A DNA stretch of 64,000 nt from Obrimoposthia wandeli (GCA_977020255.1 CDROCS010006636.1:1-64000), one strand, 5' to 3'; shown: positions 7,577 through 40,760, numbered from the stretch's first letter. Numbers and translations are program-made. Notes: generated from the sequence alone by a model not told the origin.

Positions 7577-7719
7577 TATACCCGTTACCAATCAAAGTGC
7601 AGAATTTCAGTGGGAATTAAAACCACTTTAGGCAAGGTAAATAATTTAAGCATAGTCATTCTATGGTTTGATTATTTAACGCCGTATAAAATGATTTTAA
7701 ACCCATCAAAGAAGCGCTT
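7577..7719 (+). mobile_element. truncated ERIC-like MITE (left half of the 26791 family) inserted in an attC site
   Basis: TATACCCGTTACCAATC...CATAGTCATTCTATG...GAAGCGCTT, colinear with 26791-26933; flanked by R'' CAATAAC (7550) and an attC right half (7720-7765). Confidence 0.85.
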
Positions 7720-7765
7720 CACATTTTAGCTCACTATTACTTAGCCCCTTATTTGGGCATTATAC
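7720..7765 (+). mobile_element. right half of an attC site with mutated crossover
   Basis: CACATTTTAGCTCACTATTACTTAGCCCCTTATTTGGGC-ATTATAC, nearly identical to 742-787. Confidence 0.8.
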
Positions 7766-10917: not shown

Positions 10918-11014
10918 ATATAAAGTACCAGTAAACAGATACAAAACAGTTGGCTATCTTCATTTATCATGTCTTTTAGCTGCCATTATTTAACCTCTTA
11001 TTGAGGTATTATAT
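10918..11014 (+). mobile_element. degenerate attC site (both AAC and GTT mutated)
   Basis: ATATAAA...ACAGTTGGCT...TTTTAGCTGCC...ACCTCTTATTGAGGT-ATTATAT. Confidence 0.65.
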
Positions 11015-19200: not shown

Positions 19201-19223
19201 TAGGCACTCATAATAAGAGCCTA
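19201..19223 (-). terminator. probable intrinsic terminator after the TSP3-repeat gene
   Basis: TAGGC(A)CTC-ATAATAA-GAGCCTA hairpin. Confidence 0.5.
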
Positions 19224-19281
19224 TCCCCGTTACCAATCAAGATGCATGTTTCAGAGTGCACTTTGAATGGCAACGGGTATA
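19222..19281. mobile_element. 60-bp mini ERIC-like element (termini only)
   Basis: TATCCCCGTTACCAATCAAGATGCA...TGCACTTTGAATGGCAACGGGTATA. Confidence 0.8.
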
Positions 19282-19334: not shown

Positions 19335-22300
19335 CTACTCTTTAGCTAAGTATTTTGGTCGCTGTAATCTCGATATAAATAATGAAAATAAAGCGAACAA
19401 AGTAAAGAAGGCGAAACTACCACTGCTTGATTTTTCAGGGGTCACTTCAAGTGAAATAGTATTGTTGTCAACCACGGCTATGCCGCCAGGATCATCAATC
19501 ACACCATTAGCAATGCCATCTGCATCATTGGCGCCACCATCTTCAATAAATAACTTTAAACAAGTATCTCCAACATTAAGGCCAGCTTGATAAAGCTCAC
19601 TATGTGGTGGCGGACAAACACCATTAACAGCCTTACTGGTGGCAATTACGTTATTACTGTCTTCAGCAAAATCTGCCCATTGCTGTTCAGCGTTTACCTT
19701 ACGATAAACAGAGTATTCAACGATAGCAGCTGATAGGGGCAAAACAATGGCAACTGAGCGACCAAAAGGAGCTATGTTGTGTATTTCCAAAATCAAAATA
19801 GCCCATTGTATTCGTTAAACTATCTTGTTCAACTAAACCTGTAGCCAAAATTTCTTGTTGCGAAAGCTCTATACCATCAGAGCTTTGCAGCAGCGCAAAC
19901 TTACCCAGTTTTAATTGCAAGCCTGGCTCAGTTTCCGCTAACTTCACTAATGCCGCATTAATATGTAATGGCTGTAAGTATGGAATTGTTGAATTATCCA
20001 TGTAAGCGGGCAATCCGTCTGAGTCTGCATCGCTAAAGCCTTCAACCAAATCACTAATGCCGTCTCTATCACTATCTAAACCACGTAATGTTCGTTGAGT
20101 CGCCAATAAAGCTAGGTAAACCTGCTTAGTTTGTGACAGCTCTTCTGTACCGCTATTGGTGGTATTACCGCTATCAGTCACTGTGACGCTAAGATTAATA
20201 AGGCCTTTATTCTCTTCAGGTAGATTCAAACCATCGACGGGGAAGACAAGTTGTAATTTATCCGTTGAAAGCACAGCACTTAAGTAGTCAGGAATTTGCC
20301 AATCAATTTGATGGGTATCTTGAACATTAGAGTCTTTAATCCTTAAAACGACTGTCACTTCACCATCATTGATAGCAATGCTAGGCACTTGTATACCTTT
20401 TTGCCAGATTGCTAGGTCGATATTTGGCGCAACATTATCTTCTGTAATCGTAATGATATGTTTCGCATGAACGCCAGCATTTACACCTTGTTCAAGACTA
20501 ACAATCAGCTGCTCATCACCTTCTAGTTGAAAATCACTATTAATATTAATATCGATAAAGCCTGCAGTACCCTGCGTTATTACGATCTTGTTATCTGCAA
20601 TATTATAATCCGCATTATCGACACCACCTGTGATTGTTAGTGGCAAGGTCACTGGATAAGCAGGCGCTTCACCAGATAACACCACTTCTACTCGGGCAAC
20701 GCCACCTTCAGCAACAATTTGTGCCGATGCAAAGTTCACTAACGGATGAATGTTTAATACTTGTGATACGTTGGCAATATTACCGGCGTTATCTACTGCT
20801 CGCCATAATATTGGGATCAAACCAGAGCTAACATTTTTAGCACCTGTTTCAAAACCTAATGCAGTTAAACCACAGCAGTTTCTGCCATCGAGACCATCAC
20901 GTACTGTAATATTGGTTAAGTCGATTAACCGCTGTAAATCTAATAAAGTAAACGTATGATTGGCATTTATATGCACAGCTTGTGGCGGCGTAATAATTGG
21001 CGCGTAATCATCCCGCAATGGGTGACTGCCCGCTAAAGCTTCTGCTACGTTGGTAACACCATCAAAGTCGGTATCTAAAAGTCCATCATCACCATTAAGT
21101 GGGTCAAAGTTATGCAATAGTTCAAATGCATCACTCATACCATCACCGTCATCATCTAAATCCGCGTTATTACCAATTAAATCGCCGTCAGTGTCAAACT
21201 GTTCACTAGCATCTAGTGGCAGCTGGTCTTGAAAGTCTGATACACCATCATTATCATCATCACTGTCAAAAACATTACCTAAACCATCACCATCAGTATC
21301 AAACGCTTCAACTGGGTTATTAGGAAATGCATCGTCTATATCTCTGATGCCATCATTATCATCATCACTATCGCTGTTATCTCCTAAGCCATCATTATCT
21401 GCATCAAGCCATTCTGTTGCATCCAGAGGGAATAAATCGATACTATCGAGACGACCATCGCCATCATCATCGGTATCGGCATTATTACCTGTGCCATCTC
21501 GGTCAGTATCAAACCATTCTAGCGGATCATCATCGAAAGCATCTATCGCATCAGAAAAACCATCATTATCATCATCACTGTCCGCATTATCGCCAACGCC
21601 ATCACCATCGTTATCGTATTGTTCGTTGGCATTTAGCGGATAAATATCATTGCCATCTAAAACGCCATCACCATCATCGTCTGTATCAGCATTATTGCCC
21701 GTTAAATCGCTATCCGTATCAAGCCATTCAGCAGGGTTAAGAGGGAATGCATCGACACTATCAGGGTAACCATCGCCAGCTAGTGTGACATTATGAGTAT
21801 CATCATCAGAGTCGCTATTGTTACCTATACCGTCACCATCTGAATCAACTGATTCTAGTGAATCAAATGGGAAATCATCTAGCCCATCAAGTACACCATC
21901 ATTATCATCATCTAGATCAGCATTGTTCCCCGTACCGTCACCATCAGTATCACGGTCTTCCAGCAAATTAATTGGAAAGGCATCTGCAATATCAGTAATA
22001 CCATCATCATCATCATCACTATCGGCAATATTATTTCCTAAACCGTCGCCGTCAGTATCTAACCATTCTGCAGGATCAAGTGGAAAGGCATCTGTGGCAT
22101 CAGGTATACCGTCACCAATAAGTGTAACGTTATGGGTATCATCATCTGTATCAGCATTATTGCCGATGCCATCACCGTCAGTATCTATATACTCACCAGC
22201 ATCAAAATCAAAGTCATCATTAGCATTAGTAATACCATCGCCGTCTATATCGGCATCGCTGTTATCACCTAAACCATCACCATCTAAATCAAATTTCTCA

Positions 22301-23391
22301 GTCGAGTCTAAAGGAAAAGCATCTGTAGCATCTAGCTCACCATCACCATCAGCATCAGTGTCAGGTCCATCACAAGTCCCGTCATTATCGGTATCTAAAC
22401 GCTCAAGAGGATCTAATGGACATTTATCAGTACCATCTTGTACACCATCACCATCATCGTCATCATCGGCATTATTACCTATACCATCATTGTCCGTATC
22501 TAATGTTTCTAATGGATCAAGTGGCATATCATCATCAACATCAAGAACACCATCATTATCATCATCGGTATCGGCATTATTACCTATCATATCCCCATCG
22601 GTGTCATACCATTCACTATTGTCATAACGAAAAATATCAAGGGTATTTACAATGCCATCACCATCAATATCTGGATCTTGTGCATTACCAATACCATCTG
22701 CATCCAAATCAGCATTGACATTAAAATCTAAAGGAAAAGCATCACTGCCGTCATTGACACCATCCCCATCATCATCTATATCAGCATTATTACCAATGCC
22801 ATCAAGATCGGTATCGATAGTTTCAAGGGGGTCAAGTGGGAATTGGTCATAAACATCAAGAACACCGTCAGCATCATCATCACTATCGGCATTATTACCT
22901 ACACCATCATTGTCAGAATCTAAGCTTTCTTGACTGTTAAGCGGGAATACATCAAGTAAATCAGGCGTACCATCATTATCATCATCGGTATCAGTATTGT
23001 TACCTATAGTGTCATTATCGGTATCAAGCCATTCACTGGGATCTTTAGGCAGGGGGTCATGAATATTGATAGCTAAGTCGCCATCATCGTTATTATCATC
23101 GCCACCATCTAAACCATTGAGTAGGCCATCGCCATCAATATCGGGATCACTGTTATTACCTTGGCCATCGAGATCAGTGTCAATCCATTCAAGTGGATCG
23201 CTAGGGAATAAATCAACAGCATCGTCATAGCCATCAAGATCAGTATCTACGGCAAAAGCACTGGTACTAATGACCAGTGTAAGTATGCTTAAGAATTTAA
23301 AGCTACGTATTTTATACTTCAACACACGTTTCTCCACGGAGAGTATTATCTGGAATTGAAACCAGATATTTATGTCAAATAACTTTAGCAA
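19335..23391 (-). CDS. large secreted Ca-binding TSP3-repeat surface protein with GlyGly-CTERM-like anchor; one +1 frameshift near 19789
   Basis: Signal peptide …STSAFA; ~20 units of 35 aa DxDxDGxGNNADxDDDxDG..D.FP.D..E; GGANDADGIANGVIDDPGG; tail SSSGS + TM + basic residues; frames rejoin as GYFDF/EIHNIAPFG. Confidence 0.85.
21030..23245 (-). repeat. ~105-bp coding tandem repeat (~20 units)
   Basis: Units counted in the translation; two carry a 7-aa THNVTL(I/A) insertion. Confidence 0.9.
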
Positions 23392-24366: not shown

Positions 24367-24421
24367 TATACCTGTTCCACTTCAAGATGCCTGCTCAGGA
24401 TTTTGAAGTGGAACGGCTATA
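24367..24421. mobile_element. 55-bp mini ERIC-like element
   Basis: TATACCTGTTCCACTTCAAGAT...ATTTTGAAGTGGAACGGCTATA. Confidence 0.75.
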
Positions 24422-25970: not shown

Positions 25971-26700
25971 CAAGTTTCCTTAAGGGATTTGTTCGCAGGT
26001 CTAAAAGATAATTGGAACTGGTTAAATTGTTTAAATTTTTCAAGTAGCGGCTGGTATTTTCCCGCATGTTCAGGCGTAATCGGCACAGAATCATTACCCT
26101 GCTCTGCTGAGTCATAAATCTGTTCAATACTCTGCTCCAAAAGGGCTAAAGCATAACAGCTTGCTTCTAAACTAGATAAGGCATTTTTTTTCGCTACTTT
26201 TCTAATAAGATATTGCCCCGTATTCGCTACATAATCAGGTAGGCATACTTGCGGTAATTGTTGAAGTTTTGTTGATAGCATAAACATGCGGTAAGCTTTT
26301 TTCCACGTACCATCAAGAATAAGTAAACAAAGAGGTTTGGCTTCAGTATTAGTATTGGATTTAGCATTGGTCTCTATATTTTCATTACTTTGATCATGAT
26401 TAGTCAATTTCATTACTAAGTTTTGATCAAGAGTTTGTGCTTGCTCACCAGGATAAAGTAAAACGAGCTGGTACTGCTCCATCATTTGTAAGAAAGAAGC
26501 TTCAATGCAAAACCTCACTGAATCATTAACTCAAAAGATTTCAATGATTTTGCTAATAACGCAACTGTCCCTTTTGTTTGTGATACTTCACTAGGATGCT
26601 GTAGTACCACAAGATGAATATCATTCTCGATATCTGCAATAAAAGTACAAATACAAGCTTTTGGGGGCCGTTGACAACAAGGGCAAAGTGTTCGAGACAT
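25970..26700 (-). pseudogene. DTW-domain tRNA-uridine aminocarboxypropyltransferase-like protein, split near 26518
   Basis: CxxCxRPxxxCIC, LQHPSE, LDGTWKKA, LSSLEA motifs in two frames. Confidence 0.85.
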
Positions 26701-26790
26701 AGAGTAGTAAAATAAAGCGCAATTAATTAGGCAGTCATTGTATACTTTATCACTCTTTTATAAATCACTAACTGATAACTTTTAACTATT

Positions 26791-27054
26791 TATACCCGTT
26801 ACCATTCAGAGTGCAGGTTTTCAGTGGGAATTTAAATAGCTTTAGGCAAGAAGAATAATTTAAGCATAGTCATTCTATGCTTTGATGATTTGACGCCGTA
26901 TAAAGTCATTTTAAACCCATCGAAGAAGCGCTTGAGCAACATCACTTCATCGTTGCTTTGACTTATAAGGGAATAACCATTACTTCATCACAGTGCCTTG
27001 AATTGAAATTGCTCAAGCACTCTGAAACCTGCATCTTGATTGATAACGGGTATA
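26791..27054. mobile_element. 264-bp cloverleaf MITE, family 1 (ERIC-like termini)
   Basis: TIR TATACCCGTTA(C/T)CA...; arms GGG..TTTAAA/TTTAAACCC and GCTTGAGCAA/TTGCTCAAGC. Confidence 0.85.
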
Positions 27055-27079
27055 CATTCAATGACTAACAATTAAGCGC

Positions 27080-27700
27080 ATGACACTAACATTTAAAAAC
27101 CTTCCACTGAAAAAACAACACAGCATGGTCGTTACAATCGTCGCTATGCTCGCTATTCTCGCCTATTTTTTCAATGATGCTATAAGTGGGCTTTTCGTTT
27201 ATCAATACCAATTAATTAGCCAAGGTGAATTATGGCGTACTTTCACCGGACACTTTTTTCACACCAACGGAATTCATTTATTATTAAATTTAGCTGCATT
27301 AGCTCTTCTGTGGGCTTTACATGGCCATTTTTATAATTTTAAAAGCTACAGTTTACTCTTTATCACATCGGCTTTAATTTGCAGTGCCGGACTGTATTTT
27401 TTCTCTCCTGAAATTCGTCAATATGTTGGACTTTCAGGTGTTTTACACGGAATTTTCGTTTTTGGCGCCATCATGGACATTCGACATAAAGATAAAACTG
27501 GCTACTTATTATTTGTCGGAGTATGGCTAAAAATAGCACATGAACAATTTTACGGAGCAAGCGAGCAAGTATCGACATTAATTAATGCTAATGTAGCGAT
27601 CGATGCGCATTTATGGGGAGCTGTAGGTGGATTACTCTTTAGCTGTTGTTATGTGGTGGTAACTAAAGAGAAAATTTCATCAAATAATAATGAACATTAA
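27080..27700 (+). CDS. rrtA: rhombosortase (rhomboid protease of GlyGly-CTERM proteins)
   Basis: GELWRTFTGHFFH, HLLLN, YVGLSGVLHG (catalytic Ser), AHLWG (catalytic His). Confidence 0.9.
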   Translation: MTLTFKNLPLKKQHSMVVTIVAMLAILAYFFNDAISGLFVYQYQLISQGELWRTFTGHFFHTNGIHLLLNLAALALLWALHGHFYNFKSYSLLFITSALICSAGLYFFSPEIRQYVGLSGVLHGIFVFGAIMDIRHKDKTGYLLFVGVWLKIAHEQFYGASEQVSTLINANVAIDAHLWGAVGGLLFSCCYVVVTKEKISSNNNEH

Positions 27701-27706
27701 AAAACG

Positions 27707-27745
27707 AAAAAAAAGACCAAAAGTATAAACCCTTAGTCTTTTTTT
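27707..27745. terminator. bidirectional terminator between rhombosortase and galE
   Basis: AAAAAAAGAC...GTCTTTTTTT between convergent genes. Confidence 0.6.
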
Positions 27746-27784
27746 GCTTTTTATATCAGTCAGTACTTTAACTTTGATTAGTAT

Positions 27785-28807
27785 TTAAAAACCATTCGGG
27801 TTTTCAGACTGCCAACGCCAAGTATCTTGGATCATGGCAGTTAAATCGAGCTTAGCTTGCCAATCTAATAGTTCATTCGCTAAAGATGCATCAGCGTACA
27901 CAGTAGCTAAATCTCCAGCTCTGCGTGGCACTACTTGATAAGGGATATCTTGTTTACTAATGTCTTTAAAGGTATTAACTATCTCTAGTACCGATGTACC
28001 GTTACCGGTACCTAAGTTAATTGCCTGACAACCTTTAACGGTGCCTTTAGCATGACCTAGACTTTCTAACGCTTTTACATGGCCTTGTGCTAAGTCAACC
28101 ACATGAATATAGTCACGTACACCGGTGCCATCTTGCGTATCATAATCATCGCCAAAAACTTGTAACTGCGCTAAACGCCCTACTGCCACCTGCGCTACGT
28201 AAGGCAATAAATTATTAGGAATGCCGTTAGGGTTTTCACCGATCAACCCAGATTGGTGTGCGCCAATAGGATTAAAGTAGCGTAAACAAGCAATAGACCA
28301 AGAGGCATCACTTTTGGCTAAATCAAATAGAACATGTTCAACCATCAGCTTGGTTTGACCATAAGGGTTAGTTGCTGAAGTAGCCATGGTTTCGTTTAAT
28401 GGTGAAACGTTATTCCCATAAACAGTGGCTGAAGAGCTAAAAACTAAATTCTTTACCTGATGTTTTTCCATGACTCGCAATAACGTAATCGTACCTGAAA
28501 CATTATTTTGATAATACGCTAATGGAATTTCAGTAGACTCACCAACCGCTTTTAGTCCAGCAAAGTGAATTACCGCTTCTATCTTATGCTGATTAAACAC
28601 TTGGTCTAAGGCATCTGCATCACAAACATCCGCTTTAATAAAGGTAACGGTTTTATTGGTGATTTTTTCAATACGTTCAAGTACTTTAGTTGACGAGTTC
28701 GATAAATTATCAACTATAACAATTTCTTGCTCATTGGTACTTTGTAGTAACTCAACAACAGTATGACTACCAATATAGCCTGTACCGCCTGTGATTAATA
28801 AACTCAT
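27785..28807 (-). CDS. galE: UDP-glucose 4-epimerase
   Basis: TGGTGYIGSH, FSSSATVYG, YGQTK, LRYFNPIGAH. Confidence 0.97.
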   Translation of the reverse strand: MSLLITGGTGYIGSHTVVELLQSTNEQEIVIVDNLSNSSTKVLERIEKITNKTVTFIKADVCDADALDQVFNQHKIEAVIHFAGLKAVGESTEIPLAYYQNNVSGTITLLRVMEKHQVKNLVFSSSATVYGNNVSPLNETMATSATNPYGQTKLMVEHVLFDLAKSDASWSIACLRYFNPIGAHQSGLIGENPNGIPNNLLPYVAQVAVGRLAQLQVFGDDYDTQDGTGVRDYIHVVDLAQGHVKALESLGHAKGTVKGCQAINLGTGNGTSVLEIVNTFKDISKQDIPYQVVPRRAGDLATVYADASLANELLDWQAKLDLTAMIQDTWRWQSENPNGF

Positions 28808-28971
28808 TGCATCCCTACTCTTTTCGTTAACTGACTGAAATAGCTCGTTGAATTAATTTGTTGAAATTAAGTAAAACAGTTCAACTTGATACTAACTATT
28901 TTAGCGCTTAGTTTTTGACTTTGATACTAATTTCTATTTTTGATGGTAGGTTCTAACGTTACAATTTTTTT

Positions 28972-29970
28972 CTAATGTCGATAATAGCTTTCAACCTGCT
29001 TTATAAATTCAACTAATCTACCCTTGGGCAAAGCATTAACGCCTGCTGCAGCTGCTCTGCCACCGCCTGTTGGAAACTGAGCACAGATATCACCAGCACC
29101 CTGTTTATTATTTAACGGTGCCCGTAAACTTAAGGTATAACTTTGCTCATTTTGAATTTTATTTTTCGATTGTAGATCAACTTCAATTGGATTTAGCGTA
29201 ATCACAATGTGGGCTTTATCTGGTGCTTGATTGGCTAGGTCATTACCAAAAACACCGCTGACTCGACGAGACCACGCTGCATCTTCAAGCACTATCGTTT
29301 TGACAATGTCATTATCACTCAAAACATCTGCGGTGCGCGCTTTAGCCATATCAGCTAAATAAGCAGCTTTGAGTTGACTAAAAATAGAGTTTTCTTGATT
29401 AATTAATACGAAAGGGTCGGGATACTCAAGTAATGACTGGTATAGCGCTGCGGGATGAAAGTGTAAGTCACTTAACTCCTGCCCATAACCATTATAATTA
29501 ATATAAGTACCTAACTCATTGAGTTGATCTTTCTGCCGTTCTGATAAACCAACTTTCTGCGCTAAATCGCTAGCACTGGCATGCATATTATCGCCAAAAG
29601 CTGCGGCAATGGCCCAATAGCTATATTGACCTTTTAACAAATCATTAACTAACAAACTGGTACAAGTATTTGCATCAGTATTAAGTAATGTCGTTAGTTT
29701 ATTTGATTTGGGAATATCACCCGTTCTATGGTGATCAACATAAAACACATCAACTTGATTATTGATTAGTGCTTGGAGCGCTTGATTATTCTTTTCTAAA
29801 GAGATGTCTAACACAGTTACCGCTGTTGCTTTATTTACATCAACTTGTTTTAGCAGGCCAATATCACGCTTAACGCCCGTAATTAACAACGAATCTTTAG
29901 GCGTGGCTAAGCGTAACTGGAGTAAGGCAATAATGCCGTCTGCATCGCCATTAAACACATCATAATGCAT
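28972..29970 (-). CDS. DHH/DHHA1 family phosphoesterase
   Basis: NGDADG, LDIS, YVDHH, FGDN, GGGRAAAAG motifs. Confidence 0.88.
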   Translation of the reverse strand: MHYDVFNGDADGIIALLQLRLATPKDSLLITGVKRDIGLLKQVDVNKATAVTVLDISLEKNNQALQALINNQVDVFYVDHHRTGDIPKSNKLTTLLNTDANTCTSLLVNDLLKGQYSYWAIAAAFGDNMHASASDLAQKVGLSERQKDQLNELGTYINYNGYGQELSDLHFHPAALYQSLLEYPDPFVLINQENSIFSQLKAAYLADMAKARTADVLSDNDIVKTIVLEDAAWSRRVSGVFGNDLANQAPDKAHIVITLNPIEVDLQSKNKIQNEQSYTLSLRAPLNNKQGAGDICAQFPTGGGRAAAAGVNALPKGRLVEFIKQVESYYRH

Positions 29971-29999
29971 GATAAAATATCCCTGACTTTTTCAGATTA

Positions 30000-30267
30000 T
30001 AGGGTCTGTTGATCTTTCGCGGTTAAATTTTGTTCGAGATAAAAGCGTTTTAGTCGCGGCGAGTAGTGTGTAGCCTAGTCACTCTAAGCAAATACTACTC
30101 AACAAAGAGTAAAACGCTTTTAGCCGAATCCTTCGGACAGCGTTTGTTGGTCATTTTTACGGCGTTATCGCCTTTTTATGTGGAATAACCACATGACAAA
30201 GGCTCTACCTTGTATAAATACCCAACAAATAGCTGCAAAAACAATCTCGAAAGATCAACTGCCCCTA
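30000..30267. mobile_element. 268-bp cloverleaf MITE, family 3
   Basis: TIR TAGGGTCTGTTGATCTTTCG / CGAAAGATCAACTGCCCCTA; arms AAAAGCGTTTTA/TAAAACGCTTTT and TTTGTTGG/CCAACAAA. Confidence 0.85.
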
Positions 30268-30304
30268 GTATTTAATTGAAAGGTAACTGATAGTTAACTA
30301 ATTA

Positions 30305-30949
30305 TTAGCCTAGCGTCGCTTCACTAATAAAGCCTTGCGATATTAAGTAACCAACAATTTGCTCTGCACATTGCTCAACAGATTGCTCTGCCGTTTTTAC
30401 GTGAATTTGCGGCAACGTTGGTACATCGTACGTTGAATCGATACCGGTAAAGTCTTTTATCTCACCTGCTCTCGCTTTTTTGTATAACCCTTTAGGATCG
30501 CGCTGTTCACACACACTGATAGGGGTATCAATAAAGACTTCAATAAACTCTCCATCTTCAAGCTTAGCTTTGGCTAATGCTCTATCACTAGCAAAAGGAG
30601 AAATAAACGCGGTTGAAACAATTAGGCCTGCATCAAGGAATAATTTAGCCACTTCTGAAATACGACGAATGTTTTCAATACGCGCTTCATCACTAAAACC
30701 TAAATCTCCATTCAGACCGTGACGAACATTATCACCATCAAGTAAATAGCTATGACAACCCAATTTAAACAACAACGCATCCACGGCATTAGCTACGGTA
30801 GATTTACCTGAGCCACTTAAACCGGTATACCAAAGCAGTGCTGGTTTTTGCTGTTTTAAATTAGCACGTTGTTCTTTGCTGATTTGTTGATTATGCCACA
30901 CGGTATTTTCTGTTTTCATACTGGCTGTTTTCTCATTGGCTGTTGTCAT
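30305..30949 (-). CDS. cysC: adenylyl-sulfate kinase
   Basis: TGLSGSGKST, LDGDNVRHGL, RDPKGLYKKARAGEI. Confidence 0.97.
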   Translation of the reverse strand: MTTANEKTASMKTENTVWHNQQISKEQRANLKQQKPALLWYTGLSGSGKSTVANAVDALLFKLGCHSYLLDGDNVRHGLNGDLGFSDEARIENIRRISEVAKLFLDAGLIVSTAFISPFASDRALAKAKLEDGEFIEVFIDTPISVCEQRDPKGLYKKARAGEIKDFTGIDSTYDVPTLPQIHVKTAEQSVEQCAEQIVGYLISQGFISEATLG

Positions 30950-31042
30950 GCTAAGTAAGCTCTATATTGGGATGTAATCAAGGCCACTAATTAGATTGCA
31001 TTAAATTAAGCAAAATAATTAACGACTAAGTTAACAGGAAAA

Positions 31043-32770
31043 TTAAAACGGATAAACAATGGGAATAACCAAAATTACCGTTGCGCTATAAATCAGTGAA
31101 ATAGGTAAACCAAAACTGACAAAATCTTTTAATTGGTAATTACCGGCGTTATACACCATGACATTGGTTTGATAACCATAAGGGCTGATAAAGCTACCAC
31201 TTGCAGCAAAAGCTACCGCCATTACAAAGGGCGTTGGGTCTACGCCAAGGCCGAGGGCAATATTATAAGCAATAGGAAAGGCTAATGCTGCTGCAGCGCT
31301 ATTGGTAATCAACTCAGTCATTATCAGCGTTAAAAGAAAGATACTAACAAAAGCGATATAGATATTTTGACCGTGTAAAAATCCTTCAATATTTTGCGCC
31401 AACATAACGGCAATGCCCGTATTTTCAATGGCTGAAGCTAACGTTAATGCACCTAATACAATCATCCAAATTTCTAAGGGAAAACGGCGTTTTATTTCAT
31501 TCACTGAGAGTGAGTCACTGAAAATTAAAAAAGCTAAGTAGATAAATAAGCAGCTAAGTAAAGGCAGTGGCGTAAAAACTGACACTAAAATACTGGTAAT
31601 AAAACCCCATACCGTGGTGTAATCACGCCAACCATTGAGCATATTCTCAGCCTGATGGCCTGATAATATGAAAAAGTTTTTTGACAAATTAGGTCTAGTG
31701 GCAAAATCTTGCCCTACCGCTAACACCAAAAAGTCTCCTGGTTGTAGTACGATATCGCCTAATTTTCCTGATAATGCTCCACCTTCTCGGCGAACCGCAA
31801 CAACAGCTGCATCAAAACGCGCACGAAAGCCGGCTTTTTTTAAGGTTTTTCCTGCGATGGTTGAATCAGCTTTTACTAGTACTTCAGTTAAATTATCACG
31901 TAATAAATCATCTTGCTCTGCATACAAATTCAAACCATCAAACTGCTGTAATGTCAGTACTTTTGATATATCTCCACTAAAAATGAGCTTATCTTGTGCT
32001 TGGAGGCACTCTTCAGGGCAGACAGGTGAAATTAATCGTCCCTGACGTACTATTTCAACGAGAAATAAAGAATCTAAATTTCTCAGGCCATTTTCTTCAA
32101 TACTTTTACCAATTAAAGCAGATGCTGTTGCTACTTCGGCTTCGAGCAAATATTCATTAGTCGCTAAATCATCATCAACTAAGTTAGGTAAAGTGCGGCT
32201 GCGCACTAAGATAACAAATAAACATAAAACAAAAGCCGATAGACCAATTAAGGTAAAATCAAAAAAACCAAAACCTTGATGACCTTGTTTAATCAATAAG
32301 CTGTTTACAATAAGATTGGTAGAAGTGCCCACTAACGTTAGCGTTCCCCCTAAGATAGCGGCAAACGACAAGGGTAATAAAAGCTTACCAGGATTAATGA
32401 GTTTATTTTTTTTCACGGTATTGATGAGCGTTGCTACCACCGCAGTGTTGCTCATAAGCGCTGAAGCCAAAGCAGTACCGAGTAATAATCGTAAGGTCGA
32501 CTTTACTTTTGAGCCGTTAAAAACACCGGCTGATAAGCGTCTTAAAATACTGGTTCGTTCAAATGCAAAAGAACACAATACTAACAAAACCAGGGTAACA
32601 AGACCTGGGTTAACGGCATTCGTTAAAATGTCATCAACGCTGACAAACGACAGTGCCAAACACAACAAGACCGTCACAGAGAAAACCCGCTCTGGTACGT
32701 GGCTGTATTTAACTAAGCTGATAAAAGTGGCAACAAACACACCTATCATCAACCACTGTTCTATTGCCAT
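31043..32770 (-). CDS. SLC13/CitMHS-type permease with TrkA-C domains (putative sulfate transporter)
   Basis: LGGTLTLVGTSTNLIV, two TrkA-C regions, SPYGYQTNVMV. Confidence 0.9.
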   Translation of the reverse strand: MAIEQWLMIGVFVATFISLVKYSHVPERVFSVTVLLCLALSFVSVDDILTNAVNPGLVTLVLLVLCSFAFERTSILRRLSAGVFNGSKVKSTLRLLLGTALASALMSNTAVVATLINTVKKNKLINPGKLLLPLSFAAILGGTLTLVGTSTNLIVNSLLIKQGHQGFGFFDFTLIGLSAFVLCLFVILVRSRTLPNLVDDDLATNEYLLEAEVATASALIGKSIEENGLRNLDSLFLVEIVRQGRLISPVCPEECLQAQDKLIFSGDISKVLTLQQFDGLNLYAEQDDLLRDNLTEVLVKADSTIAGKTLKKAGFRARFDAAVVAVRREGGALSGKLGDIVLQPGDFLVLAVGQDFATRPNLSKNFFILSGHQAENMLNGWRDYTTVWGFITSILVSVFTPLPLLSCLFIYLAFLIFSDSLSVNEIKRRFPLEIWMIVLGALTLASAIENTGIAVMLAQNIEGFLHGQNIYIAFVSIFLLTLIMTELITNSAAAALAFPIAYNIALGLGVDPTPFVMAVAFAASGSFISPYGYQTNVMVYNAGNYQLKDFVSFGLPISLIYSATVILVIPIVYPF

Positions 32771-32928
32771 TTAGTTTCCTTATTCTCAAAAAAAGACGCC
32801 ACAAACACTATTACCAAAAGGTATAAAGAGTTTATGGCGGTATTTGTGCTGTAAAAGGTAGCGCGACATTATATCGCGCTAAATTGATACTATTACTCAG
32901 TACTTTATTAAGTATTTTACTTAATACG

Positions 32929-34326
32929 CTACTTCGTAATGTCGCGAGCACCCCAGTGTGGGAACTGCTTGCGAACTAATGCATTCAACTCTAATTCAAA
33001 CGCTGAGTACTCATGTGTTTTCTCATCGATAGCATGATTTATCATGCCCGCACCAACGGTAACATTACTTAATCTGTCGATGATAATGAAAGCGCCCGTG
33101 CCTTGATTATCTTCATAAGCGTCAAAATGTAAGGTTTCGCCAGCAACAAAGTTAACGATACCGATATCGTTAACCGCTAGCTGTGAGCTAGGTAAACTTT
33201 CCATGGTGTTAACGTCATACTTGCTAACAATGCTTTGCGCATGACCTGTGGTCATTTTGCTGCCGTGTTTGATAAAGTACTCACGACCCGGCTCAAGTTC
33301 ATTCTCATGCATCCATACTACGGTTGCATTAAGCTCTTTCGCTGAAATAGGTAAACAACCCTTTTTAACGATGATTTCGCCACGGCTGATATCAATTTCA
33401 TCTTCAAGCGTTATCGTTACCGCCATACCTTTATCAGCACGCCTTAAATTACCATCAAAAGTGACTATTTCTTTAACAACACTTTCTTTACCCGATGGCA
33501 AAGCAACAATGGTATCGCCAACCAATACATGGCCTGAAGATATAGTGCCGGCAAAACCACGGAAATCTAAATTAGGGCGATTAACATATTGCACTTGAAA
33601 ACGTAGTTGTGTACCCTTCTTGCTTCTTCACGTCAATAGTATTTAGGAGCTTCATTAATGTAGCGCCTGATACTACAGCGTTTACGCTTTCTGTCTACCA
33701 CGTTATCGCCATTAAGCGCTGACAGAGGTAATAAAACGTACATCACTAAACGTTAACGATTCGGCAAATTCACGGTATTCTTTTGATTTCTTGCAGCGCT
33801 CGCGAGTAATCAACCAAATCCATTTTATTCACGGCAACAACAATATGTTTGATACCCAATAATGAACAAATAAACGAATGACGACGTGTTTGAACTTGCA
33901 CACCATAACGCGCATCAATCAAAATAATAGCGATATCACAGGTAGATGCACCCGTTGCCATATTACGAGTATATTGCTCATGCCCTGGAGTGTCTGCAAT
34001 AATAAATTTACGTTTGTCGGTTGAGTGTGCTAACGATAAGCAACATCATTAGTGATGCCTTTTGCTCACGTTCAGACTGTAAAACCATCAACAAGCAGTG
34101 CTAAATCGATAGCCTCACCTGTTGTACCTGATTTTTTTGAATCTTTTTCAATCGCAGCAAGTTGATCTTCAAAAATCATCTTTGAGTCATGTAATAAACG
34201 ACCAATTAAAGTGCTTTTACCATCATCTACGCTACCACAGGTTAAAAATCTTACTAATTCTTTGTTTTCATGTTGCTTTAAATAAGCTTGAATATCGTCT
34301 TCAATTAACTCTGACTGGTGACTCAT
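32929..34326 (-). pseudogene. cysN: sulfate adenylyltransferase subunit 1, broken into three ORFs (probably sequence errors)
   Basis: [51 protein letters not shown]. Confidence 0.92.
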
Positions 34327-34382
34327 AAGGTTTTCCTTGCAAAAATTTTCATCAATAAAATGCTATAAAGTAAAGTTGGGGC

Positions 34383-35282
34383 TTAGAAGTAGCCTTCCAT
34401 CTTTTTCTTTTCCATCGAACCAGCGCTATCGTGATCTATCACGCGCCCTTGACGTTCAGAGGTTTTCGTTAATAACATTTCTTGAATAATTTCAGGTAAG
34501 GTATTCGCCGTTGACTCAACCGCGCCCGTTAATGGATAACAGCCTAAGGTTCTAAAGCGTACACTCTTCATTTGTACTTCTTCATCTTCACCAATAGGCA
34601 TACGATCATCATCAACCATAATTAACGTACCATCACGCTCAACTACAGGACGTTTTTCTGCAAGATAAAGCGGTACAATTGGAATACCTTCTAAATAGAT
34701 ATATTGCCAAATATCAAGTTCTGTCCAGTTAGACAATGGGAAAACACGGATGCTTTCGCCCTTTTGTACTTTGCCATTATAGATATTCCACAATTCAGGA
34801 CGCTGATTTTTCGGGTCCCAACGGTGGTTTTCGTCACGGAAAGAATATACGCGTTCTTTCGCACGAGATTTTTCTTCATCACGACGTGCGCCACCAAAAG
34901 CAGCATCAAAACCGTATTTGTTTAACGCTTGTTTTAAACCTTGGGTTTTCATCACATCAGTATGCGTAGCACTACCATGAGTGAACGGACCCATACCCAT
35001 TTCAATGCCTTCTGGATTTTTATGTACTAGCAACTCAAAATCGTAGTCTTTAGCCATTTGATCACGAAAGGCAATCATCTCTTTAAATTTCCAATCCGTA
35101 TCAACATGCAATAACGGAAAAGGTATTTTACCTGGAGCGAAGGCTTTGCGAGCTAAATGTAGTAATACAGCCGAGTCTTTGCCGACAGAATACAACATCA
35201 CGGGATTATCAAATTCAGCCGCTACCTCACGAAAAATATGGATAGATTCAGCTTCAAGTGTTTTTAAATGGGTTAAATTCAT
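34383..35282 (-). CDS. cysD: sulfate adenylyltransferase subunit 2
   Basis: [36 protein letters not shown]. Confidence 0.98.
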
Positions 35283-35462
35283 TGCTAATACAAACTTTAT
35301 GAAAAATTAATAAGCTTATAATGCCATAAATAGATATATTTTCCATATAAGAAACGTATTCGATATAACCAAAAGTAATATAGAGCCCTAAAGCTAATAT
35401 AATTATTGTGATATTACCGCTACATTTTATGAAAGATTATACTAAAAAATGCAAAATTAAAA

Positions 35463-35487
35463 AAAAGTCAGCATTACGCTGACTTTT
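35463..35487 (-). terminator. intrinsic terminator after comEA
   Basis: AAAAGTCAGC-ATTAC-GCTGACTTTT, with an A-run giving a U-tail on the minus strand. Confidence 0.75.
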
Positions 35488-35515
35488 AAATAATGGATCT
35501 GAGCTTATACCAAGC

Positions 35516-35854
35516 CTAAATACTTAACCTCGCCTTATTTTCACTAACAATCTTTTCACCAATACCACTAACATTAGTTAGCTCATTGACCGATTTGAAG
35601 GCACCAACTTGTTGGCGATAAACAATAATGGCTTGAGCTTTAGTATGCCCGACGCCCTTTAATGTGACCAACTGTTCAAATGTTGATTTATTCAAGTTAA
35701 CAACTTGCTGTTTTACTGATTGCTCACTTTGTCCTTGTGCAGCCTGAGTAACATTGGTCTCTTTAGCAAGACCGAATGAAGAGTTAACAAGTAAAATAAT
35801 GCCTAAAGTTAAGGCTGAAAGGGTTTTGTTGAGGTGTTTTGGCTGAATATTCAT
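35516..35854 (-). CDS. comEA: ComEA helix-hairpin-helix DNA-binding protein
   Basis: Signal peptide; VNLN...LKGVGHTKAQAI...FKSVNEL..VSGIG. Confidence 0.92.
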   Translation of the reverse strand: MNIQPKHLNKTLSALTLGIILLVNSSFGLAKETNVTQAAQGQSEQSVKQQVVNLNKSTFEQLVTLKGVGHTKAQAIIVYRQQVGAFKSVNELTNVSGIGEKIVSENKARLSI

Positions 35855-36057
35855 CTTTAATTCCTTGTAAAGTTATCCATTAAAAAAGCAACTGAATAGC
35901 GTCTAATAAAAAACCTAGTAGCAACTGAACAGTCATTACTAGGTTTAGATCGATAACTCGCTTTTGTCAAAATACACTTTAAACATTCAAATTATTATTG
36001 GCTGGTTCGCTACAAGCTAATAATGATTATCTTATGCTAAGTTATTGTTAGACTATT

Positions 36058-36582
36058 TTATTTCCAAACGATCTTAGCCAGTTGCTGTTCACCTTCGGCC
36101 AAGTTCATTTTGATAATTTTATTATTTTCACCAATGGTGATCAAACGAGGAATACCACCCGAAGCAAAGCGTCTATATATACTACGGTCATTATCAACCG
36201 CTAATGCGACCTTAATACCACGCTTATCACGCCAAGCCGTAACCGTCTCAATATCTTCTTCTCGAGCAATAGCAATGACTTCAATATCTTCCATTTCGAG
36301 TAAAGGGGAACTATTTAACGCTTTAAGTAAACGATTAGAATCATGACACCAAGTGGCAAACAAAATAACCAATTTACGTTTTCCTAATTGCTGTAAATCC
36401 AGTTCTTCACCGTCAATAGTGGTAATAGTTTCAATGGGTAATAAGTCGCCCGAATTCACATATTCATCATGTACTATAGCTTGCGATTGGTTCAATGGCA
36501 TAGCCTGACAAGCAGACAAAACAATCGTTAAACTAACGATAAAAAATAACCGTTTTAATTTACTCTCAGTGGTTTTAACCAT
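36058..36582 (-). CDS. TlpA/ResA-like thioredoxin-fold lipoprotein (CxxS)
   Basis: Lipobox LSAC; FATWCHDS; GIPRL. Confidence 0.85.
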   Translation of the reverse strand: MVKTTESKLKRLFFIVSLTIVLSACQAMPLNQSQAIVHDEYVNSGDLLPIETITTIDGEELDLQQLGKRKLVILFATWCHDSNRLLKALNSSPLLEMEDIEVIAIAREEDIETVTAWRDKRGIKVALAVDNDRSIYRRFASGGIPRLITIGENNKIIKMNLAEGEQQLAKIVWK

Positions 36583-36789
36583 GAAAAATATCCCTAAATA
36601 AATTGAATTTTGTTAACAAACCTGAACTTTGTTTAATACTTTAACTATCCAATAAACAGAGTTCAGGTTAACTACCTAGTATTTAACCCTAAATTCAACT
36701 ATTTTCCAACAAACAAAACAAAAATACGTATCTACTAGCGCTTTGCTCATAGCTTAATTAGAATAGCTGTCATTATTATTATTGTCTGT

Positions 36790-37055
36790 CATATCAATCA
36801 GATTAAATAAGTGATCACTTAGCGAGAATTAAAAGGCTTAGAGGCAGGCATTGATTGAAGAGAATGGTTATTCCCTTGTCAAGATCGATAACGCCGCATG
36901 TAAGCCTTTTTAAACTCGCCCTTCGGGAGCTCATTAGCAAACTGATAACATCACAAAATGAATAAAATATAGAATGACTATGTTTAACCCATTTTATTTG
37001 TTCTAAGCTCGCTAATGTAGCTCTAAGTTGGTCAGTTAATTAATACGATTGGTAT
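36790..37055. mobile_element. 266-bp cloverleaf MITE, family 2
   Basis: TIR ATATCAATCAGATTAAATAAGTGATC / GGTCAGTTAATTAATACGATTGGTAT; arms AAAAGGCTTA/TAAGCCTTTT and GAGCTCATTAGC/GCTAATGTAGCTC. Confidence 0.85.
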
Positions 37056-37073
37056 CATTAGTGTAAGGAAATC

Positions 37074-40000
37074 ATGAGCAAAGCAAGCAGCCTGTTAACC
37101 CCGGTATTGGCCAAGCGCCGTGGCAAAAATCCCGATAAGAAGAGTTGGCATAATTTACATGGCAGCAGCAGCAGTTTTGCCCTTTATCAAGCAGCGAAAA
37201 CAGCGAAAACGCCTATATTATTGATCACCAGTAATACTCCCCAGGCGCTTAAAATTGAGCAAGAGTTACTCAGTTTAGCTAAGAGTGATAGCCAAAATAA
37301 GGCTAATATCTGCTTGTTTCCTGATTGGGAAACATTACCGTACGATAATTTTTCACCTCACCAAGATATTATCTCTCAGCGCCTTGCTACCTTGTACCAA
37401 TTATCACGTATGGACTCTGGCATTATTATTGTGCCGGTAACCACCCTAGTACAAAAGCTTGCTCCTAAACAATACATTGAAGCAAACAGCTTAATAATAA
37501 AACAAGGTGATAAGAGAGATTTACATCAAATGCGACAAGCCCTAGAAGCAAGTGGCTATCGTAATGTTGATCAAGTATTAGAACATGGAGAGTTTTCTGC
37601 TCGAGGCGCTATTTTAGATCTTTTCCCTATGGGAAGTAATAAGCCATTTCGTTTAGATTTCTTTGATGATGAAATTGATGAAATTAGACTCTTTGATACT
37701 GAGAGTCAGCGTTCAAAAGAGAAAATTGAGGAAATTAATTTACTGCCCGCGCACGAATTTCCCATAGATGAAGCAGGTATCAACTTATTTCGTAGTCAAT
37801 TTCGTGAACAATTTCAGGGCAATATTCATAAAGAGTCTGTTTATCACCAAGTCAGTAATGGTATTTTACCGCCTGGTATCGAGTATTACCTCCCCCTGTT
37901 TTTTGATAACAAACAGGACAGTGAAAAAGAAGGTGTAATACTTAGCAATACTCTTTGTGATTATTTAACTGATAATACTCTGGTCGTTATTAGCGGTGAT
38001 ATTGAACACTCTTTAACGCAATACTGGCTTGATATAGAGTATCGTTATGAAAATAGACGTTACGACCCTACTCGGCCTTTATTACCGCCAGAACAGCTAT
38101 TTTTAACCGCTGATACGCTTTATAGCGCGTTAAAGCCGTTTGATCGTATCACCATTGCCAAGCAAACCTCAACAGAGCAGAGCCAAACGCAAAGTGATAT
38201 CAATCAAACTGGTGAAGATGTTCTTATCACAGAGAATATTGATGAAAGTGTTGAGGTAAAAAGCAAAAGCAGTGAAATATGTTTTGATGTTAAACCGCTA
38301 CCTGATTTAACCATCAACCATAAATTGAAGCAGCCGTTCGAATTAATCAATCAATTCATCCTCAGCAAAGAAACCCCCAACAAAGTACTTTTTATCGCGC
38401 AAAGCCAAGGTCGCCGAGAAAGTGTGCTTGAGTTGCTCGAACGTGACAATATTAAACCTGCTCAGTTTGATAACATCGATGACTTTATCAATGCAACGGA
38501 TACCATTGGTATTACCGTAAATAGCTTAACTCAAGGATTTGCTTTTCAAGCAAAAGGTAATAGCCAGAAAAATGCGATTGCACTGGTTACTGAAGCCGAG
38601 TTATTGGGTGATCATGTATCTCAAGCCAGACGACGTACCAAAGCGCAAGATTTACAAGCTGATGCCTTATTTAAAAACCTTGCTGAGTTAACCATTGGCC
38701 AACCAGTTGTTCACATAGAGCATGGTATTGGACGATATTTAGGTCTGCAAACGATTGAAAATGGCGGCATAGTTACCGAATTCCTCGTGCTTAGTTACGC
38801 GAACGAAGCCAAACTTTATGTACCAGTAAGCTCTTTACACTTAATAGGTCGATATTCTGGCGCTGATAGTGACCATGCCCCACTGCATAAGTTGGGTAAT
38901 GATACTTGGAGTAAAGCCAAGCAAAAAGCGGCAGAGAAAGTCCGTGACGTTGCCGCCGAATTACTTGATATTTACGCAAAACGTGCAAGTAATCATGGTT
39001 ATAGTTTCAAACGTGACAAACAAGACTACCAAGCTTTTAGTGACAGTTTTGGTTTTGAAGAAACCTTCGACCAAAAACAAGCAATTAATGCCGTAGTAAG
39101 CGACATGTTATCGCCTAAAACCATGGACAGACTTGTCTGTGGTGATGTTGGTTTTGGTAAAACTGAAGTCGCTATGCGTGCTGCTTTTGTGGCGGTAAAT
39201 GATGGCAAACAAGTCGCAATACTTGTCCCCACAACATTACTGGCTCAACAACATTATGAAAACTTTAGAGATAGATTTGCCAACTGGCCGGTAGTCACTG
39301 AAGTATTATCACGATTTAAAACACCTAAAGAACAAAAAGAAGTCATTGCTAGAGTTGAGTCTGGTCAAGTCGACATTCTTATCGGCACCCATAAGTTACT
39401 GCAAAACAGTATAAAATATAAAGATCTTGGCTTATTGGTTGTTGATGAAGAACACCGATTTGGTGTTAAACAAAAAGAAAAAATCAAACAACTACGCAGT
39501 AACGTTGATATTTTAACGCTAACGGCAACCCCTATTCCACGTACCTTAAATATGGCCATGGGCGGTATGCGTGATTTATCTATTATTGCCACTCCGCCTG
39601 CAAAACGCTTAGCGGTAAAAACCTTTGTTCGCGAACACGATGAAGCCTTGATCAGAGAAGCTATTTTACGTGAAACCTTACGTGGTGGTCAGGTCTATTA
39701 CTTACATAACCATGTTGATACTATTGATAAAACAGCCGCAGACATTCAAAAATTAGTACCTGAGGCGCGTGTCGTTACCGCCCATGGACAAATGCGTGAG
39801 CGTGAGCTTGAGCGCATCATGAGTGATTTTTATCATCAACGCTTTAACGTCATTGTTTGTACTACCATTATTGAAACGGGTATCGATGTACCCAGTGCCA
39901 ATACGATCATAATGGACAGAGCAGACCATCTTGGTTTGGCACAATTACACCAACTGCGTGGCCGAGTAGGTCGTTCGCATCATCAAGCTTATGCTTACCT

Positions 40001-40699: not shown

Positions 40700-40760
40700 T
40701 ATATTCTCGTTACCAAACAAGATGCATGTTTTTAGCGTGCTTTGAGTGGTAACGGGTATA
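40700..40760. mobile_element. 61-bp mini ERIC-like element
   Basis: TATATTCTCGTTACCAAACAAGATGCATG...TTGAGTGGTAACGGGTATA; followed by the hairpin CTTGAGCAA..TTGCTCAAG (40769-40809). Confidence 0.8.

Follow-up and report, generated by a model that had tools for sequence, protein, structure and literature searches.

MITEs are usually seen as gutted copies of a single IS whose interior is filler. Those derived from IS630 and IS5 elements, among them Correia/NEMIS, MITEAba12 and Chunjie, are short, carry TIRs matching a resident IS, are flanked by TA, TNA or YTAR duplications and show presence/absence polymorphism, the ordinary ones being internal deletions of one IS. ERIC/IRU (MITEEc1, IS630 in ISfinder) is a TA-flanked, 127-bp element that lies between genes and folds as one central hairpin, with the motifs CAAGCG and AACGCAG around it. 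Inverted pairs of a small conserved hairpin are also characteristic of REP/BIME/REPIN elements, which are known to influence mRNA stability at the RNA level and to be bound by host proteins; REPs are 20–40 nt long, have neither TIRs nor target duplications and depend on RAYT (Y1) enzymes for their movement. Integron attC sites may serve as an analogy, being conserved in structure over sequence and functioning through one folded strand.

Three ~265-base repeats, E1, E2 and E3, were compared with these systems. They lie in a 64,000-nucleotide stretch of DNA (the window) from the Obrimoposthia wandeli assembly (GCA_977020255.1, CDROCS010006636.1:1-64000), and their host is a Colwellia-like marine bacterium. 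All three are intergenic and non-coding, spanning 264–268 bp. E1 (26791–27054, plus strand) is a 264-bp MITE of class A with ERIC-like ends, E2 (30000–30267, plus strand) is a class B MITE whose ends match an IS5-family IS, and E3 (36789–37057 including duplications, minus strand) is a class C MITE whose ends match IS630-family ISs. Corrected borders place E1 at 26793–27052 between two TA dinucleotides, presumably a target duplication, its ends reading TACCCGTTACC after the first TA and GGTAACGGGTA before the second. E2 occupies 30002–30265, opening with TA followed by GGGTCTGTTGATCTTTCG and closing on TA, and E3 occupies 36792–37054 between 3-bp TCA duplications. The terminal stem is paired at 93% over 16 pairs (60 copies), as expected of MITE TIRs. 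As the initial annotation had proposed, these elements combine dissimilar ends with one geometry and two invariant loops, and its coordinates and loops were confirmed; TIR identity between classes is 0.28–0.41 versus 0.45–0.49 for the core. Partial class A copies are also present in the window. A truncated copy on the plus strand (7577–7719) comprises the left end and arm 1 (7618–7700; 63.5 bits with the arm covariance model R1), ends where a 45-nt repeat starts and keeps arm 1 at the offset previously attributed to it. Ends-only elements, consisting of two class A ends without a core, occur at 19222–19281 (60 bp), 24367–24421 (55 bp) and 40702–40760 (59 bp).

E1, E2 and E3 are mobile MITEs. 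An empty allele of E2, joining 30001 to 30269 across a single TA, was found in public runs X1, X3 and X13, and public runs also yielded an empty-site contig for E1, together with loose contig ends at 26789–91 and 27054. Among the retrieved loci, no orthologous copies of the window's insertions were detected on other contigs. Target duplications vary by family, being TA for E2 and apparently E1, TNA for E3 and YTAR elsewhere; within class C, TNA was duplicated in 42 of 56 copies, with an equal middle base in 42 of 47 against a chance expectation of 0.43. The ends of E2 match those of an 857-bp IS at 18 of 19 positions. This IS encodes an IS5 transposase (NF033580, 275.6 bits) and is present in at least seven near-identical copies, or ~10 by transposase matches. 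The ends of E3 match ISs of 1117–1127 bp that encode an IS630 transposase (NF033545, 150.8 bits). The right end of E1 is identical to an E. coli ERIC copy at 27 of 36 positions, a score reached by 0 of 2000 shuffles, and class A ends are homologous to ERIC ends; the left end matches weakly, with a score equalled by 92 of 2000 shuffles, and E2 and E3 had no match in this comparison. The ERIC-like termini recognized earlier are therefore a property of E1 and not of E2 or E3. Our search found no IS bearing class A ends.

These matches bear on the earlier proposal that a single structure-specific system, either a HUH/RAYT nuclease or a cruciform-binding protein, recognizes the shared loops and moves all of the families. 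Loops and internal-loop motifs are indeed invariant across end types and genera, and IS630 partners are often missing: IS630-type genes were found in 7 of 81 sampled family genomes and in one of five element-bearing genomes, and the complete genome G001 lacks an IS630 gene but contains class C copies. Given its absence from 74 of the 81 relatives and four of the five element-bearing genomes, IS630 was rejected as a general partner. However, the ends match two unrelated DDE families, IS5 in E2 and IS630 in E3, and the staggered-cut duplications (TA, TNA and YTAR) are not a HUH signature. Y1/HUH transposases (Y1_Tnp) were not found in two of the five element-bearing genomes, so that the RAYT/HUH partner suggested by the initial annotation was likewise rejected for inconsistent co-occurrence. 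We regard a single mobilizing system as very unlikely.

In contrast to ordinary IS630- and IS5-derived MITEs, the interior of these elements has an origin other than the matching ISs. No significant similarity links the core to them, R1 finds no arm inside any of these ISs, and one interior is common to MITEs of two unrelated transposase families. It occupies the inner ~190–200 bp and comprises two mirrored ~80-nt hairpins, in most cases separated by a short G+C mini-hairpin. Each hairpin is laid out as CAAGGC, stem, R-GTYATTC-Y loop, stem and AACGCAG. The element is two-fold symmetric, arm 2 being a mirror copy of arm 1: motif order is identical in both halves, arm 1 aligns colinearly with the reverse complement of arm 2, and R1 matches each arm in the inward sense only. 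In E1, arm 1 (26832–26914, plus strand; R1 57.8 bits, E 3e-11) has the loop TAG-TCATT-CTA, with its tip TAGTCATTCTA at 26867–77, and arm 2 (26932–27015, minus strand; 70.4 bits, E 2.5e-14) has the loop GG-TTATT-CC on the minus strand, its tip reading GGAATAACC at 26970–78. The corresponding arms of E2 lie at 30040–30123 (plus strand, 63.5 bits), tipped by TAGTCACTCTA at 30076–86, and 30144–30227 (minus strand, 74.0 bits), tipped by GGAATAACC at 30182–90. Those of E3 lie at 36933–37015 (minus strand, 53.8 bits), tipped by TAGTCATTCTA on the minus strand at 36970–80, and 36830–36912 (plus strand, 74.2 bits), tipped by GGAATAACC near 36868 on the minus strand. Every loop of the three elements lies 76–79 nt from the nearer element end, in agreement with the offset of 78–79 nt noted before. 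A central mini-hairpin, initially ascribed to each element, is present in E2 (CCGAA-TCC-TTCGG, 30124–30136) and E3 (CCC-TTC-GGG, 36919–36927) but not in E1, whose centre has the CGAAG motif without a stem; overall, 107 of 173 copies have it, compared with 19 of 173 shuffles, and the E1 family lacks it.

Although ERIC shares its end type with E1 and has similar motifs flanking its hairpin, its hairpin sequence is unrelated, and a 127-bp element with one central hairpin differs from a ~265-bp element with two mirrored arms. Loop and host range also differ, and the core described here occurs between non-ERIC ends as well. The ERIC core sequence is absent from E1, E2 and E3, and the ERIC hairpin was rejected as a homologue of the arms, as R1 gave no match on the E. 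coli ERIC copy, and the sole hint of a relationship lies in the CAAGCG/AACGCAG motifs.

All three elements fold far more stably than their shuffles (z = −7.2 for E1, −9.6 for E2 and −5.6 for E3) into a terminal stem, arm 1 and arm 2. In an alignment of 60 copies, compensatory double changes were observed in 54 of 62 stem pairs, 92.6% of stem cells were paired versus 36–42% with slid pairing, and the covariation score was 0.635 versus 0.10–0.13. Structural conservation is therefore real, with shape and loops kept while stems have changed across several repeat families and genera, which bears out the pattern of structural selection first read from the window. A fold without function would need the palindromes to be kept by descent and templated correction, and the loops to be conserved because the families are young. 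MITEs are commonly palindromic, these families share ancestry (core identity 45–49%) and chimeras (L165) record recombination between families, yet stems are almost wholly different between families while loops stay constant across orders of Gammaproteobacteria, and templated correction yields perfect pairs rather than the strand-dependent surplus of G·T relative to A·C described below. With substitution input at unpaired sites balanced, we consider a functionless fold highly improbable.

The two arms differ in the wobble pairs they tolerate. Across all copies, G·T:A·C was 241:34 in arm 1 and 45:143 in arm 2 (Fisher p = 1e-45), and the opposite bias persisted in 33 representatives of <80% identity (p = 4e-8), although these p-values overstate independence owing to kinship among copies. 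Rare within-family variants show the same tendency (24:4 in arm 1 versus 12:25 in arm 2, p = 2e-5), substitutions at unpaired sites are balanced, and the asymmetry is robust to deriving the structure from the opposite strand. The terminal stem has no clear bias (105:129). The hairpin is thus strand-specific, its ability to fold being maintained on the top strand for the left copy and on the bottom strand for the right one, and the opposite biases indicate selection on each arm to fold in the strand that runs from the arm's own end towards the centre.

Arms that favour wobble on opposite strands exclude a single cloverleaf RNA and disfavour a plain cruciform; the initial annotation had raised both a structured RNA and a cruciform-binding protein. 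Reading the whole 265 nt as one repeated structured non-coding RNA gene would accommodate the strong fold z-scores, the covariation and the UNCG/GAAG-like central loops. It conflicts, however, with G·U favoured on opposite strands in the two arms and without clear bias in the terminal stem, with insertion polymorphism and target duplications, with copies that occupy every type of intergenic space in both orientations and with the absence of a promoter signal. No Rfam family matched either: a gathering-score search of the window gave no matches, and an E-value search of 26700–37150 gave a single chance miRNA match (E 0.55). We judge such an RNA gene extremely improbable. The asymmetry also argues against one shared HUH/RAYT nuclease, as the hairpins lie on opposite strands, unlike in IS200/IS605 or REP systems, and opposite wobble biases are unexpected for a cruciform, which needs both strands to fold. 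The elements further depart from REP/REPIN-RAYT and IS200/IS605 systems in having duplications, DDE-type ends and 80-nt arms with no consistent Y1 partner, and from attC, a single 57–141-nt site used on one strand only by a tyrosine recombinase, in having TIRs, duplications and a mirrored pair.

In a single-stranded DNA reading, the hairpins would form on the lagging-strand template or on the strand with its 5′ end at the transposon tip, helping the two ends to meet or recruiting a host DNA protein during transposition, and the mirror pair would ensure that either strand, when exposed, has one good hairpin. The asymmetry follows the ends of the element and not the neighbouring genes, and rare variants bear signs of selection, as they should if copies are filtered for their ability to transpose. 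Of the mismatches in DNA hairpins, G·T does the least harm, which leaves single-stranded DNA some plausibility. Gene context shows no bias in orientation or position relative to genes, which would suit this reading too. Of 106 copies, 57 were flanked by tandem, 30 by divergent and 19 by convergent genes. Neither gene 3′ ends nor convergent gene pairs were enriched for copies, distances to 3′ and 5′ gene ends were similar, and copies between tandem genes had no orientation bias (35 vs 22). A terminator-like placement, considered as a candidate, was unsupported by the same 106 copies, and a terminator and promoter scan of 26.5–37.3 kb gave counts at or below shuffle expectation and no consistent site in the elements.

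On the other side, ends-only class A copies of 55–60 bp also multiply without any arm, and at least 14 further C253 matches span nearly the whole short form; the core is thus dispensable for mobility. IS630 and IS5 transposition is not known to involve long single-stranded intermediates. Moreover, A·C is ~6-fold depleted relative to G·T, which appears near neutral, and this fits RNA better. We therefore infer that RNA is favoured over single-stranded DNA as the acting form, and consider a role as single-stranded DNA during transposition rather unlikely. Metatranscriptome contigs bridge the borders of E1, which fits transcription and DNA carry-over alike, and the contigs carry no strand or ends. 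ERIC elements are co-transcribed, and their effect on mRNA depends on orientation (PMC2229807).

Beyond the window, the architecture spans several repeat families and genera, as initially suggested, with at least six end types sharing this core. The census pattern TAGTYAYTCTA-N80-110-GGAAHAACC matched 65 times in the assembly versus 0 for the reversed control. Full copies in the assembly numbered ~27, 10 and 11 or more for classes A, B and C. A further >120 loci were found outside the assembly, in Colwellia, Shewanella, Thalassotalea, Psychromonas, Pseudoalteromonas, Thiodiazotropha, Halothiobacillus, Acinetobacter and other Gammaproteobacteria. Of 400 further genomes sampled evenly across the class, only one carried the pattern, and the element is therefore patchy rather than class-wide.

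Building on the observed mobility, layout, transposase-type matches, covariation and strand asymmetry, we propose that these elements probably form one MITE superfamily with two layers, in which family-specific ends enclose a shared, mirrored and strand-specific core with a single-strand role. The outer ~30–38 bp on each side would act as TIRs, recognized in double-stranded form by a resident DDE transposase (IS630-type for E3, IS5-type for E2 and ERIC/IS630-like for E1), and the ends would differ between families because the transposases differ. The hairpin would act in single-stranded form, most likely as RNA produced by read-through transcription, and the mirror pair would present one correctly oriented hairpin whatever the direction of insertion or reading. 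Its role may be that of a signal for processing, stability or insulation, or of a site for a conserved host protein, and a hairpin-binding factor common to the families is possible. More tentatively, the ~80-nt hairpin could be a portable module, that is, an RNA or single-stranded DNA signal bound by protein through the invariant loop UYAUU and the CAAGG/AACG internal loop, which moved between or was captured by unrelated transposons, became orientation-proof through mirroring and is kept by selection at insertion sites as a regulatory or insulating element.

In these elements the conserved part is the interior, which recurs between ends belonging to two or more unrelated transposase families, and its fold has been kept through wholesale sequence change with a mirrored, strand-specific signature of selection. 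If the two-layer model is true, it would provide a concrete, testable case on the old question of whether the folds of bacterial MITEs have a function, a defined ~80-nt hairpin with which to seek a partner protein or processing event, and an example of a structural module switching between transposon families. Ultimately, were the hairpin also a portable module, it would constitute a mobile, orientation-proof regulatory or insulating element across marine Gammaproteobacteria.

The window lies on a bacterial contig (37.7% G+C) within a 1.35-Gb eukaryotic assembly that contains further bacterial contigs, among them C253, a 4.68-Mb chromosome. Several related marine bacterial genomes are present in this assembly (C253, C1117, C4670, C6288 and others), and sequence near-identical to the window was found in marine metatranscriptome runs. 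The three elements, E1 (26791-27054, class A), E2 (30000-30267, class B) and E3 (36789-37057, minus strand, class C), are all intergenic, have their closest outside matches in Colwellia and relatives and carry the sequences, loops and offsets described in the initial annotation, with TAG-TCA(T/C)T-CTA tipping arm 1 (loop 1) and GG-AATAA-CC tipping arm 2 (loop 2). BLAST recovered approximately 27 full copies of E1, 10 of E2 and at least 11 of E3 from the assembly, besides sub-families, and the two loops at the correct spacing gave 65 matches compared to 0 for a reversed control. With a conserved CCTTG placed 17 nt past loop 2 added to the pattern, more than 120 loci were detected outside the assembly, spanning Colwellia, Shewanella, Thalassotalea, Psychromonas, Pseudoalteromonas, Thiodiazotropha, Halothiobacillus and Acinetobacter, as well as Methylophagaceae and other groups. 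Only one of 400 additional, evenly sampled genomes of the class contained the pattern, indicating a patchy element. Size variants (loci L052, L058, L037 and L038; L021-L023, L057 and L061) had an 11-12-nt insert (ACCTAATAAAAGGTA) right behind the centre in some copies and approximately 48 nt extra in others (311-312 bp).

The predicted fold of each element comprised a terminal stem and two long arms and was far more stable than that of shuffles (z = -7.2 for E1, -9.6 for E2 and -5.6 for E3). A central mini-hairpin, originally proposed for all three, was recovered as a short G+C hairpin in E2 and E3, whereas E1 has the CGAAG motif without the stem; 107 of 173 copies formed this hairpin, against 19 for shuffled segments. 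RNAalifold analysis of 60 distinct copies from at least four families recovered the terminal stem and both arms, with both-sided changes in 54 of 62 pairs, 92.6% of cells paired (36-42% with slid partners) and a covariation score of 0.635 (against 0.10-0.13), values reached by none of 500 shuffles. Loops and loop-closing pairs were invariant, upholding the proposal that shape and loops are conserved despite changed stems. Between end classes, terminal inverted repeats (TIRs) shared 28-41% identity, of which 28% is about the random level, and cores 45-49%.

The two arms are mirror images. Loop 2, when read on the opposite strand (GGTTATTCC), corresponds to loop 1 (AGTYATTCT), the two halves have one motif order in common (end ... 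TCAG ... CAAGGC, 16 nt, loop, AACGCAG ... centre), and arm 1 is colinear with the reverse complement of arm 2 in an alignment of 37 diverse elements. A covariance model built from these arms found exactly seven in the window: E1, E2 and E3 contributed a pair apiece, and the seventh lay in the truncated class A copy at 7577-7719. It matched every arm solely in the sense reading inward from the nearer end. Wobble pairs, counted on the top strand of 159 copies that fitted the structure well and came from other genera as well as this assembly, were skewed in opposite directions, with 241 G·T and 34 A·C in arm 1 and 45 G·T and 143 A·C in arm 2 (one invariant T:G column set aside), compared to 105 G·T and 129 A·C in the terminal stem. 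Arm 1 differed from arm 2 across all copies (Fisher p = 1e-45) and among 33 representatives below 80% identity (p = 4e-8), both p values being generous owing to kinship among copies. The direction was consistent across families, persisted among rare within-family variants (24:4 versus 12:25, p = 2e-5) and held when structure was predicted from the opposite strand using only the 54 shared pairs (167:28 in arm 1, 49:163 in arm 2), whilst the two substitution kinds were balanced at unpaired positions. Each arm is therefore selected to fold on one strand, with the two arms on opposite strands. This fits neither a structured RNA nor a cruciform, two of the options raised initially, since a single cloverleaf RNA needs the same strand for both arms and a cruciform needs both strands equally.

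The ends tell of separate partners. The complete genome of Pseudocolwellia sp. HL-MZ7 carries an 857-bp insertion sequence (IS) in at least seven near-identical copies (around 10 going by transposase matches), with termini TA|GGGGGTGTTGATCTTTG ... CAAAGATCAACAGCCCC|TA, 18 of 19 positions identical to E2 at the extreme tips, and an IS5-family transposase (NF033580, 275.6 bits, cut-off 110). The E3-type end, (T)ATACCAATTGGATTAATTAA, terminates 1117-1127-bp ISs in three other genomes that encode an IS630-family transposase over two frames (NF033545, 150.8 bits). Searches for an IS with E1 ends found none; the E1 right end matched an E. coli ERIC copy at 27 of 36 positions (0 of 2000 shuffles as high), the left end more weakly, and the E2 and E3 ends gave no match to it. 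By its ends E1 is thus a relative of ERIC, which ISfinder lists as MITEEc1 under IS630 (PMC11602168); membership in ERIC proper was rejected for all three elements, which fail on size, single-hairpin core and the model test. The core had no significant similarity to the interiors of the matching ISs, and the arm model found no arm within them. The HL-MZ7 genome has 10 E3-type MITEs and no IS630 gene, so these appear to be orphans; it also has approximately 35 IS200/IS605-type Y1 transposase genes. On C253, an IS630-type transposase gene (3878711-3881677), 75% identical to that of the E3-type IS, is split by approximately 2.4 kb of other DNA, and IS630-type copies on C2834 and C506 contain stop codons; partner ISs of this assembly look decayed.

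The elements are mobile DNA. Three public runs, two of them metatranscriptomes, contained alleles lacking E2 (joint 30001->30269, one TA remaining), E1 was absent from one public contig, and many unrelated flanks in public runs stopped exactly at 26789-91, 27054, 30000 and 30267; the empty joint and flank ends place the E2 borders at TA|GGGTCTG...|TA. Identical 3-nt TNA flanks were present in 42 of 56 class C copies, including E3 (TCA/TCA), and the middle base was identical in 42 of 47 (chance expectation 0.43). Class A flanks showed no repeat past the terminal TA, and another class, in Halothiobacillus, had 4-nt TTAA/TTAG flanks in two of three copies. Class A ends-only elements of 55-60 bp occur at 19222-19281, 24367-24421 and 40702-40760, with at least 14 additional matches on C253 spanning nearly the whole form; public contigs in which 206-213 bp of E1 are skipped seem to represent these short forms as well. 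A Colwellia MAG (DT_17) locus, L165, joins a class A left end to a class B, IS5-type right end through the common core, a chimera that is evidence for inter-family recombination through that core. IS-matched ends, a core unlike the ISs, ends-only forms and this chimera together make ends and core separable layers: family-specific ends confer DDE-type mobility, and the common mirrored, strand-specific hairpin core is dispensable for it.

Elsewhere in the window, a 45-nt direct repeat (CACATTTTAGCC..ATTACTTAGCC..TTATTTGGGCGTTATA) recurs at 742-786, 2834-2878, 7720-7764 and 10969-11013, lying just upstream of an ORF start at both copies examined (742 and 7720); the truncated MITE stops precisely at the start of one repeat. 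One possibility is a cassette-like array, another a common leader. An extended series of 105-nt (35-aa) repeats at 21100-23250 on the minus strand lies within a large gene, whose product resembles a surface or adhesin-type protein rich in repeats.

The functional unit would be one hairpin in single-stranded form, and the mirrored pair may confer independence from orientation. RNA is favoured as the acting form, on indirect evidence, because the elements occupy sites at which transcripts are expected to read through; ERIC, which is co-transcribed, affects mRNA stability in a way that depends on its orientation (PMC2229807). The main rival is a role as single-stranded DNA during replication or transposition. 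The metatranscriptome contigs that bridge E1 borders could derive from DNA. A·C pairs appear approximately six-fold depleted and G·T nearly neutral; the gene context of copies showed no bias, and no signal stood out in a terminator and promoter scan. As a kind, the elements are MITEs, and they differ from the descriptions we found in the literature in having one non-IS core common to MITEs of two unrelated transposase families, and in its mirrored, strand-specific selection signature.
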